From: Haliotis cracherodii
Taxonomy: Eukaryota
DNA: 64,000 nucleotides
NCBI RefSeq assembly: GCF_022045235.1
Contig: NW_027266330.1
Location: 34,224,001 to 34,288,000, forward strand
Direction: 5' to 3'
Shown here: in pieces, positions 5,564 to 8,500 of the stretch
How the letters are laid out: each line of letters begins with the position of its first letter
Numbering within the stretch: position 1 is the first letter of the stretch
Translations under genes and position numbers: made by a program
Notes under the pieces: model-generated
Databases searched by the model: none
What the model saw: only the letters and a program-made list of their open reading frames with translations
What the model was told of the DNA's origin: nothing

Positions 5564-8500
5564 TTATGTCCCTACAAAATACAAGCCAAAGAAACTGGAA
5601 GGAGGAAATTTGTAAATATACGATGTGTTGCTGACGTCGACAAACACGAGATCATCTTGTCTCAGTCGGACAGTAGCAGACAGGAAGCTCGTGACGAATC
5701 TTTCACCAGCTTCCGGCATCGTCTTCTTGGCCACAAGGATAACAGTACTGCCGAGGTTTGGCAGGTGCGTGTTGCTCCTTCTCATGATATGGAGGATGTT
5801 GTCAGGACGTCGTCGTCGTTGGCGGGTCTTGAACGTGAAGAAGGAGTAGATGTGGTAGAGGCCTGGCCTTGTTACGCGTAGAGTGTTGTCGTCACAGCTG
5901 ATGTCGCTGCTTCTGTAGGCGGAACCGTAACCAAATGTATCTGTCCATGCCAAAGAGGGATCTGGGAGGAGGAGTAAAGTGTGTTACATCCAAGTTACAG
6001 AGCATTACACATGGGCGAAGTCAATGTCGTTTTGGTTTTGGTTTGTTGTTTAACGCCGCACTCAGCAATATTCCAGCCATATGACGGCGGCCTGTAAATA
6101 ATCGAGTCTGGACCAGACAATCCAGTGATTGACATCATGAGCATCGATCAACAGAATTGGGAATTAAAATAGGTATGTGGTCGACCTCATCATATACAAG
6201 TGGTATTTTGTAGTAAATCAAATGTCGTTTTGGTTTTGGTTTGTTGTTTAACGCCGCACTCAGCAATATTCCAGCTATATGACGGCGGTCTATAAATAAT
6301 CGAGTCCGGACCAGACAATCCAGTGATTGACATCATGAGCATCGATCCACGCAATTGGAATCAATGACATGCATCAACCAAGTCAGTGAGCCTGACCACC
6401 CGATCCCGTTCGTCGCCTTTTACGACAAGCATAGTCGCCTTTTACGGCAAGCATGGGTTGCTGAAGACCTATTCTACCCCGGATGTCGTTGGTTGTTTAA
6501 CATAACAGAATAAAAAAACCTGATTTACTACAAAATACCACTTGCATATGATGAGGTCGACCACATACCTATTTTAATTCCCAATTCTGTTGATCGATGC
6601 TCATGATATTAATCACTGGATTGTCTGGTCCAGACTCGATTATGTACAGACCGCCGTCATATAGGTGGAATATAGCTGAGTGCGGCGTTAAGCAACATTA
6701 ACCTATTCTACCCCTGATGTTCACGGTTGCCTGAATAGTAATATACCATGTTTATTGGTGCTATGTGATACATTACATTCAAATAATGGCTGACAAATCA
6801 CCATTGGCATATGACCATGATGTATTTCGAACGGTTCAGAAGAACATGTTCTCAGCATACAGTGAAAATATTAACCTCCATTCATATTCTAGACTAAGTT
6901 TACTTACTGGTCGCAGTCAATGCATTACTATCAAGATACGTGTGGGCTCCTGTGTTGTAGTTGTGTTTGACTGCAGAGTCATTGTTATGGGTGTCCTGGT
7001 TCCTGGTGCTGGCGCTATCATGGATTCGGTCAGTAAACTGAAATTATACAAAATATGTCCATCTCTCGTTGTGCTTGTAAACCCCATTTTATTTGGAGCA
7101 GTTCCATTCTCAGTGTCCTGTTTTCGTTCCTGTCTCGCAATTAATGTTCCACCACACTATTACAACGACTATTATAATGACTAACATATTACTTGTCGTC
7201 TTTAGGTTTTGGACTGTGATACGAGTTTGTTGACGTACACGTTCGTGTACATGCACACTGTCAAGCATGGTGTTAGAGAGGTACCTTTCATCATTTCATG
7301 TGTTATTTGTTCTGAGGAGGTGGTAAGATCATATACTTACTCGAACTGTGATAGAGACTTCTCAAAATTTGGATAATCTAATAAGTTCTATTCATATATT
7401 AGATTACTAATAATATTCATAATAAGATTACTAAATTTCACTGAATGCAGTTTCAGACATCCTAGGTGAATACAAGGTAGGAAACATCCAATATCAGGCT
7501 ATTTATATTTTACAGTCACCCTGCTCTCGTACACAGCTAAAACCTCCTCACAGAAAGAAGTAGAGTGATCAATGATTCAAGTATGTCGTAAAAGGTGGTA
7601 TTGCGTCAGTGTCCTATTGATCTATGTTTCTCTGTCAATGTGCAAGGCATGATACTTTCTACTCCAGCTAATGGACCTATAATACGGCACTGCTTGAACT
7701 GCATCTGGTTGCCTGTTTTCAAACCTTTTTCTGTTGCTTCTCCATGGCTTGGAATAGCACGTCGTACCGTGAATAATATAAACAGCCCAGCTTGACGTGT
7801 AATTACTTTACCCTGATGTGTTTATTTTCTAGTCACTTCTATTTTAAGACCCAACGAATCCATTGTGAGTGAAAAATAAACACACGTCTTTAAAGCATAA
7901 CATAAACACATTCTGTTCCAATCAGCTACCCGTGAAGATCCGGGGTAGAATAGGTCTTCAGCAACCCATGCTTGCCGTAAAAGGCGGCAATGCTTGTCGT
8001 ACGAGGCGACTAACGGGATCGGGTGGTCAGGCTCGCTGATTTGGTTGATGCAGGTCATCGATCACAATTGGGTGGATCGATGCTCATGATATCAATCACC
8101 GGATTGTCTGGTCCAGACTCGATTATTTACAGACCGCCGTCATATAGCTGGAATATTGCTGATTGCGGCGTTAAACAACAAACAAACAAACAAACATAAC
8201 TGATAACATAATACATTCATATGAAGTAATGATAACTGTAAAGGGAGCAAAGATAAACTTACGATCGCCAGGAGCCTCTGCAGACCTTCGACATTTTCCA
8301 GACAGCAAACGGAAGTTGAATCAGTGACGTAATGCACGGTTAGATCGTGCAAGTCGGGCCTGCTGTCATTGCCCGGATGTACACCGACAGACATGCAGCT
8401 CGTGCATACTGTGCTCTTATGTACTGTAGACACAACAGTTTTAGAAAACAGACTGGCACTGTCAGTTGCCTTGGTGTTGATGTGTTTACACAGGTAGAAC

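Follow-up and report, generated by a model that had tools for sequence, protein, structure and literature searches.

Ligands of the tumour necrosis factor (TNF) superfamily such as the vertebrate FasL (TNFSF6), TL1A (TNFSF15), LIGHT (TNFSF14), TRAIL (TNFSF10) and CD40L have a type II layout and a C-terminal TNF homology domain, and share both with the mollusc proteins considered here. In molluscs the families of TNF ligands are very large (about 51 TNF-domain exons in the genome studied), and the published view of their members is that of a membrane anchor plus a TNF domain. The available portions of a paper on pearl-oyster TNF (PMC12367993) describe such proteins as a membrane-spanning region plus the TNF homology domain and mention no cysteine module in the stalk, the word 'cysteine' occurring in the reference list only, while those of an invertebrate TNF survey (preprint 10.1101/2024.07.27.603686) mention no stalk module, 'stalk' never occurring and their cysteine passages being concerned with receptors. 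PmTNF, CgTNF and AbTNF-alpha, which are the same kind of gene as the abalone ligands, are described with this layout. The present work concerns six TNF-ligand genes (G1 to G6), all encoded on the minus strand of a 64-kb window, the whole stretch of DNA analysed, of the Haliotis cracherodii contig NW_027266330.1, and in particular a short segment of their stalk in which a C-x2-C motif is followed, 24 to 29 residues later, by two adjacent cysteines (CC). Comparison of the sequences supports this segment as an unnamed conserved extracellular domain of type II TNF-superfamily ligands. No description of it was found in the full-text literature, although an earlier mention is possible, as subscription journals and supplements lie outside the coverage.

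Several described systems resemble this module in part. Ectodysplasin A (EDA) is a TNF ligand whose structured collagen-like stalk aids assembly; both stalks would be structured, but EDA has Gly-X-Y repeats where the abalone ligands have a four-cysteine module, and the sequences are unrelated. In COMP, thrombospondins and matrilins, cysteine pairs flanking coiled coils with long, clear heptads form interchain rings, and the likeness lies in the closely spaced cysteines beside a helix in an extracellular oligomer, whereas the abalone helix is short and weakly periodic and the abalone cysteine pairs flank a conserved core, at a distance of about 25 residues from each other. The stalk of TRAIL has two spaced cysteines before an amphipathic helix, which may be a further likeness. 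In the CD27 receptor, according to the available part of the report, Cys185 in the membrane-proximal stalk makes an intermolecular disulfide that changes the valency of the complex (PMC8484739), but CD27 is a receptor and not a ligand, and has a single unpaired cysteine in place of a four-cysteine module. When a profile of 20 module-bearing proteins was compared with the PDB, FasL (expectation value, E, 2.8e-20), TL1A (about 8e-17), LIGHT (1.6e-15), TRAIL (3.2e-15) and CD40L (7.9e-15) were matched, and some abalone members carry the RefSeq names 'TNFSF6-like' or 'TNFSF15-like'. All 60 of the 60 PDB matches listed start at profile position 145 or later, that is, in the TNF domain, and never reach the module, which is weak evidence because crystallised constructs usually come without the stalk. 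The one vertebrate protein retrieved among the homologs, a fish TNF-like protein (P0060), is without the module.

The module is about 45-50 residues long and lies 15-35 residues beyond the membrane anchor and 30-45 residues ahead of the TNF homology domain, as a conserved island in an otherwise variable stalk. The sequence-only reading that preceded this analysis had described the surrounding stalk as impossible to align, and the identities agree with it: when 20 full-length relatives were aligned, the module had a mean pairwise identity of 27.8% and the TNF domain one of 30.8%, against 8.7% in the proximal stalk and 11.3% in the linker encoded by exon 2. The four cysteines, whose conservation in orthologs had been left to be checked, are invariant in 40 of 40 aligned sequences from abalones to oysters and unionid mussels. 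Between Haliotis species the pooled identity is 80% in the module (192/239), 59% in the proximal stalk (79/135), 67% in the cytoplasmic tail and 71% in the anchor, the module being the most conserved portion of exon 1 in four of five ortholog pairs. Hydrophobic columns are also kept between the cysteine pairs, with leucine at position 126 in 16 of 20 sequences, isoleucine or valine at position 130 in 17 and, in every one of the 20, a hydrophobic residue ahead of the CC; this pattern points to a packed core and not to a loose linker. The signature can be written as [VI]-C-x-x-C-[D]-x-L-G ... (D-T-L-Y-D-[VI]-I in shorter forms) ... [LFVI]-C-C-L-x-N-x-E-x-L-x-x-L-[LI]-x-[IV], and no conserved basic cleavage motif adjoins it in the aligned module sequences.

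It could be argued that there is no domain here and that the shared pattern is leftover similarity among recently duplicated genes, the six genes being tandem paralogs. The paralogs are old, however, their modules being 14-51% identical (relative to G1) and their TNF-domain exons 28-66%, the stalk flanking the module has decayed to 9-11% identity, and the four cysteines persist in oysters and unionid mussels, so that we give this explanation next to no credence; a relic of recent duplication is refuted by flanks decayed to that level beside cysteines kept in every aligned sequence. An intracellular palmitoylation or zinc-finger element was also rejected, since the module lies outside the cell, C-terminal to the only anchor.

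No described domain or fold was recognised in the module. Pfam returned no family at E<=10 for any of 17 modules, and for eight of eight full-length proteins it gave nothing over the module, only PF00229 (the Pfam TNF family) at the C-terminal end together with one sub-threshold C1q match there. The best sequence-profile match in the PDB had an E of 1.9, the best Foldseek match to the module model an E of 1.1 and the best VIA-align match among 48,161 chains a Z of 3.4, while a feature search of the ESM Atlas gave no usable match for the module of P0053 or P0003. As the module model is small and moderately confident, these results mean that no known fold was recognised, and a new fold is not thereby shown. 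The proposal of a small, unnamed and conserved extracellular stalk domain, which had been exposed both to a match with a described domain and to loss of the cysteines in orthologs, is supported on each count.

Within the window, a regular-expression search of the six-frame translation picked out just six gene-like open frames with the C-x2-C...CC pattern, each of them on the minus strand, and the spacings that had been read from the letters were borne out in every one (Table 1). The only remaining matches, three in number, fall inside a 30-bp satellite at 41354-46354, whose translation into CC-rich pseudo-peptides produces the extra hits. A single hydrophobic stretch of about 21-23 residues precedes every module, giving a type II topology, and the downstream open frame of all six genes matches PF00229 at E values from 1e-12 to 4e-17, the six last exons scoring 47-63 bits against a cut-off of 23; eight of eight full-length homologs match PF00229 as well. 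Short candidates for a middle exon with the first strand (..AH[LT]Y..) are present in five genes, and that of G4 was located only partly. Exon translations were handled and searched separately, without joining, and analyses at full length relied on natural proteins from databases (P0004, P0032 and others).

The module ends at an exon boundary. In G1, exon 1 encodes a short tail, the hydrophobic anchor and the stalk, then ...VCTSC-29 residues-CC-LENVEGLQRLLAI, directly followed by GTAAGT. The gene corresponds to RefSeq XP_071084891.1 (P0032), annotated as an 'uncharacterized protein' of Haliotis cracherodii, and its three exon translations match P0032 exactly, at positions 1, 156 and 200. Spliced contigs of G1, one in each of three read runs of one study (X1, X2 and X3), carry the junctions 8263|7037 and 6908|5961; they are contiguous, 1045-1089 nt long, and cover 5569-5961, 6908-7037 and 8263 to 8784-8800. 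The runs contain 35-38% of the sampled words of the 3.3-kb gene and were labelled 'RNA?' by guess; the spliced form argues for RNA, and thus G1 is transcribed and its exon 1 boundary at 8263 is exact. The coding sequence of exon 1, from 8727 to 8263, measures 465 nt, so the intron is in phase 0. For G3, G4 and G6 the boundary has support from H. asinina and H. rubra RefSeq orthologs that run on into the exon-2 candidates of the window, and for G2 and G5 it is placed by the GT donor and by paralogy. The earlier claim that CC is followed by 13 codons and then by the intron agrees with the GT found at this point in all six genes (GTAAGT three times, GTGAGT, GTAATA and GTGTGT), phase 0 being given for G1 by the RNA contigs. 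The span 8263-8410 first proposed for the G1 module was correct at 8263, whereas its other end lies one codon and one base too far upstream, the module stopping at 8406.

Alignment of G5 exon 1 to P0008 extends two residues beyond the exon end. In P0008 (243 aa), as compared with G5 (50019-53348), exon 1 and the last exon are joined by a nine-residue piece, and the ..GAHLYLD.. candidate at about 51437-51592 is skipped, which points either to alternative splicing or to a faulty model.

Beyond the window, a profile of the six modules located 12 further module exons in the 1.18-Gb assembly, each with an anchor upstream, at 34.22, 34.29, 34.64-34.65 and 51.67-51.84 Mb of the same contig (labelled C67) and on C48, which brings the total to 18. 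A GT stands 13 codons past the CC in 16 of them, the near-identical L013 and L014 having 12 codons, and each of the 18 is followed, at 2-6 kb downstream and on the same strand, by a TNF-domain exon. The genome contains 64 PF00229 matches, amounting to about 51 near-complete TNF-domain exons, of which 18 are paired with the module. Upstream of 10 that were checked among the approximately 33 others, the module was absent (best E 0.08) within a search of up to 10 kb (7.2 kb for L033), which a more distant first exon would escape, and the remaining 23 had no module match nearby in the genome-wide profile search. The module is therefore not a mark of TNF ligands generally but of one subfamily. On C48, a contig of 287 kb, the stretch 91836-107752 carries two module-bearing TNF genes of C67:34.643-34.658 Mb in near-identical form (the pairs L010/L015 and L013/L014), and these copies probably represent a haplotype that was not merged or else a segmental duplication of very recent date. 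TNF-domain exons form additional clusters at C7:33.86-34.07 Mb, C67:38.12-38.26 Mb, C67:40.97-41.03 Mb and on C31, with the module absent in the 10 sampled.

A profile of 17 abalone modules, compared with 1.84 billion representative proteins, gave 31 matches at E<=1e-3, eight of them at E<=1e-10. All 23 single-stretch matches have the four cysteines behind an anchor-like segment; 13 run on into a TNF domain, and the other 10 represent pieces of exon 1 or truncated models, several of them continuing into intron sequence after 12-13 codons. Among the eight multi-stretch matches three were examined: P0017 and P0021 look like translated tandem repeats, while P0018 (373 aa) has one complete module, behind which the module's second half is repeated several times in tandem. 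Matches with a named source are mollusc TNF ligands or 'uncharacterized protein' entries from Haliotis rufescens, H. cracherodii, H. rubra, H. asinina and the unionid Sinanodonta woodiana, the others coming from transcriptome or environmental records, and no source-named vertebrate protein was seen among the matches looked up for this single profile. Follow-up homolog searches added Potamilus streckersoni, Saccostrea echinata and Magallana gigas; these word-index searches gave 2, 12 and 2 proteins from 9, 7379 and 3 candidates and are uninformative on other phyla. In the ESM Atlas, a structure search with residues 74-134 of P0003 found a cluster of 140 mollusc TNF-domain proteins at a template modelling score of 0.58, in agreement with a wider molluscan spread. 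Bivalve and unnamed relatives (P0020, P0051, P0053-P0057 and P0018) possess a fifth cysteine five residues before the CC, in the form C-G-x-x-x-C-C. P0058 (Magallana gigas K1QEP1, 626 aa), which combines an unrelated cysteine-rich N-terminal half with an anchor, a module and a partial TNF domain, is probably a merged gene model.

A maximum likelihood tree was built from 34 TNF domains, namely 23 from module-bearing proteins (18 abalone and five bivalve), 10 from module-less abalone exons and the fish TNF. The 23 module-bearing domains fall on one side of a branch and the 10 module-less abalone domains and the fish TNF on the other, so that a single change suffices for the module. The support of this branch is weak (73/86), other deep nodes are unresolved and several branches are long. 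The tree is consistent with, without proving, the view that the module arose once, in one subfamily of mollusc TNF ligands, before gastropods and bivalves separated.

Two AlphaFold monomer runs, one of full-length P0004 with 20 sequences and one of the G1 module alone with 40, gave the same topology at low-to-moderate confidence, a mini-sheet plus helix in which CxxC is placed beside the CC strand. In P0004 a strand at 107-110 holds the first cysteine, a short helix at 111-114 starts with the second, a hairpin (129-133/139-143) has the CC on its second strand and a helix follows at 146-167, with the anchor as a helix at 56-83 and a predicted local distance difference test (pLDDT) of about 85. 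The G1 module alone gives a strand at 6-9, a short helix at 10-13, a hairpin at 28-32/38-42 and a helix at 46-52, with a mean pLDDT of 67 and a best block of 80. The segment following the CC had been described as an amphipathic-looking helix. The helix part of that description has some footing, in that hydrophobic columns occur at +1, +7, +10, +11, +13 and +14 after the CC with a periodicity peak at 100-120 degrees and AlphaFold predicts a helix (pLDDT about 50 or lower), whereas its amphipathic character is not borne out by the hydrophobic moments, which resemble those of shuffled sequences. An amphipathic helix after the CC is plausible, not established.

Two disulfides, an interchain collar and a four-cysteine metal site are indistinguishable from sequence, and it is the monomer models and the conserved hydrophobic columns, which together favour a packed mini-domain, that weakly favour intrachain disulfides over the other two. 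The arrangement we prefer, to which we would give about an even chance, is a folded stalk module that spaces the TNF trimer from the membrane. The N-terminal CxxC turn would be stapled onto the C-terminal CC strand via two intrachain disulfides, producing a rigid three-stranded mini-sheet from which a short helix would exit and cross the exon boundary toward the TNF domain; such a knot would keep the trimer at a set distance and orientation relative to the membrane and would confine proteolytic release to the two unconstrained linkers flanking it. Several observations weigh against this arrangement. The pLDDT of the module in the full-length P0004 run is about 50-60 and that of the helix at 146-167 is below 50, the mean helical hydrophobic moment over 20 sequences is not above that of shuffled sequence (z 0.43), and monomer predictions cannot reveal interchain bonds. 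Moreover, the fifth cysteine makes the count odd in the bivalve forms, which hints at an interchain bond or a metal ligand there. That cysteine would fit the additional interchain chemistry of a collar, in which CxxC and/or CC pair across the three protomers as covalent rings round the three-fold axis and the helix serves as a short trimeric neck. Each chain has two closely spaced cysteine pairs, the number required for symmetric rings, the full-length model has a helix of 22 residues after the CC, and the hydrophobic columns from +7 onwards recur with the periodicity given above. Nevertheless, the cysteine pairs are separated by about 25 residues with conserved hydrophobic positions, both runs fold CxxC onto CC within one chain, and the helix, besides being short, is predicted with low confidence and lacks significant amphipathicity, so we regard the collar as possible while leaning against it. 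If it were true, covalent bonds would lock the ligand as a trimer at the membrane and would still do so in shed ligand that had been cut near the membrane.

Zinc or another metal could instead be bound by the four cysteines, together with the fifth cysteine or a nearby histidine in some members, within a chain or across the trimer axis. Metal-binding sites commonly contain CxxC, a histidine often stands 3-4 residues before the CC in short forms (..GHTFCC, ..EHTLCC, ..NHTFCC), bivalve forms have a cysteine near that position, and TRAIL binds zinc through one cysteine per protomer. A site of this kind is nonetheless quite improbable for a protein that is extracellular and transits the oxidising secretory pathway: adjacent cysteines rarely ligate one ion, the histidine is not conserved (position 138 is H in 5/20), no zinc-finger or zinc-ribbon family appeared in Pfam at E<=10, and no metal site was recovered from the PDB by sequence profile, Foldseek or VIA-align. 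Zinc knuckles and zinc ribbons have two CxxC/CxxH pairs, and the second pair here is a vicinal CC in 40/40. Were a metal bound, stalk structure or shedding would depend on metal or redox state. Compatible with all three chemistries is the view that the module is conserved mainly for recognition by a sheddase, a co-receptor or a TNF receptor, as a docking or processing element. Its conservation is on par with that of the receptor-binding TNF domain and the subfamily has undergone a lineage-specific expansion, but it is cysteines and hydrophobic residues of the buried type that are invariant, paralogs differ freely at the surface, with the module identities given above, and the lack of a conserved basic cleavage motif beside the module also speaks against processing, which makes this view improbable. 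A broader proposal, in our estimate rather unlikely, is that the module may be a covalent or metal/redox-sensitive assembly device of this one mollusc subfamily, where interchain CxxC/CC bonds would lock the trimer or link trimers into arrays, the fifth cysteine of bivalves adding a link, and so decide between membrane-bound and shed ligand; this would be an invertebrate route to TNF ligands that are clustered beforehand, independent of EDA and its collagen stalk. As first suggested, the roles of the module may include pre-assembly or cross-linking of trimers or control of shedding.

Table 1. Positions of the modules and exons of the six TNF-ligand genes in the window
Feature	Position	Strand	Basis
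G1 module (CTSC, 29 residues, CC, 13 residues; end of exon 1)	8263..8406	-	regular expression; exon end from spliced contigs
G1 exon 1, coding part of 155 codons, with cytoplasmic tail, transmembrane anchor, a proximal stalk that does not align, and the module	8263..8727	-	equals residues 1-155 of P0032
G1 exon 2: linker and first TNF-domain strand (..GAHTYLD..)	6908..7037	-	spliced contigs; P0032 match
G1 exon 3: remaining TNF homology domain and stop codon	5564..5961	-	PF00229 E 2.3e-12; acceptor 5961; P0032 residues 200-330
G2 module: CTDC, 28 residues, CC, 13 residues; donor GTGAGT	16784..16924	-	regular expression, donor
G2 exon 1 coding part, putative start at first Met at 17233	16784..17233	-	open frame
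G2 open frame with TNF-domain exon	14410..14820	-	PF00229 E 5.1e-14
G3 module: CILC, 28 residues, CC, 13 residues; donor GTAAGT	27339..27479	-	regular expression, donor
G3 exon 1 coding part	27339..27839	-	start 27839 set by H. asinina ortholog P0016
G3 open frame with TNF-domain exon	24474..24926	-	PF00229 E 1.6e-15
G4 module: CLTC, 25 residues, CC, 13 residues; donor GTAATA	35654..35785	-	regular expression, donor
G4 exon 1 coding part	35654..36031	-	start set by H. rubra ortholog P0003
G4 open frame with TNF-domain exon	32258..32662	-	PF00229 E 1e-12; part of exon 2 at about 32896-32994
G5 module: CFVC, 24 residues, CC, 13 residues; donor GTGTGT	53031..53159	-	regular expression, donor
G5 exon 1 coding part	53031..53348	-	tblastn 98.1% vs residues 1-108 of P0008
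G5 open frame with TNF-domain exon	50019..50480	-	PF00229 E 4.4e-17
G6 module: CVRC, 28 residues, CC, 13 residues; donor GTAAGT	62910..63050	-	regular expression, donor
G6 exon 1 coding part	62910..63347	-	donor; Haliotis RefSeq ortholog
G6 open frame with TNF-domain exon	59973..60386	-	PF00229 E 7.2e-15; exon 2 at about 61449-61556

The genes are accompanied by several other features. In G1 (5567-5983) and G2 (14410-14820) a loop of the TNF domain contains a furin-type basic run, R-Q-R-R-R-R and K-Q-R-R-R-R respectively, which is kept in P0004 of H. rufescens, with a similar Q-R-R-R-R in P0052 of H. rubra; cleavage there would cut the TNF domain itself. Three large satellites lie between G4 and G6, at 41354-46354 (166 copies of 30 bp), 54136-55827 (a G-rich 18/58-bp array) and 55857-57446 (48 copies of 33 bp with 94% match), and they account for the spikes of G+C content and GC skew in the window. 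A dispersed repeat resembling a short interspersed nuclear element is found in and between the TNF genes, at about 6040-6480 and 7928-8160 in the G1 introns and at 11786-11965, 15623-15856, 17002-17733, 18470-18721, 31129-31383 and 37043-37300. In the RNA-like runs these repeats reach a summed contig depth above 100,000, with thousands of false joints, while adjacent unique intron has a depth of 0. Five runs of N occur, at 28556-28709, 28962-29092, 34362-34495, 34585-34747 and 49046-49239, of which the third and fourth fall within the first intron of G4, where they may conceal some of the exon 2 region of that gene.

General TNF biology would remain unchanged by these findings unless an interchain or redox reading of the cysteines proves true. 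For work with recombinant mollusc TNFs, constructs trimmed to the TNF domain drop a conserved domain, and those including the module need oxidative folding. The module also provides a sequence marker by which the mollusc TNF families can be divided into natural subfamilies. Its conservation points to a structured portion of the stalk, which may control how these cytokines are presented, covalently assembled or released.

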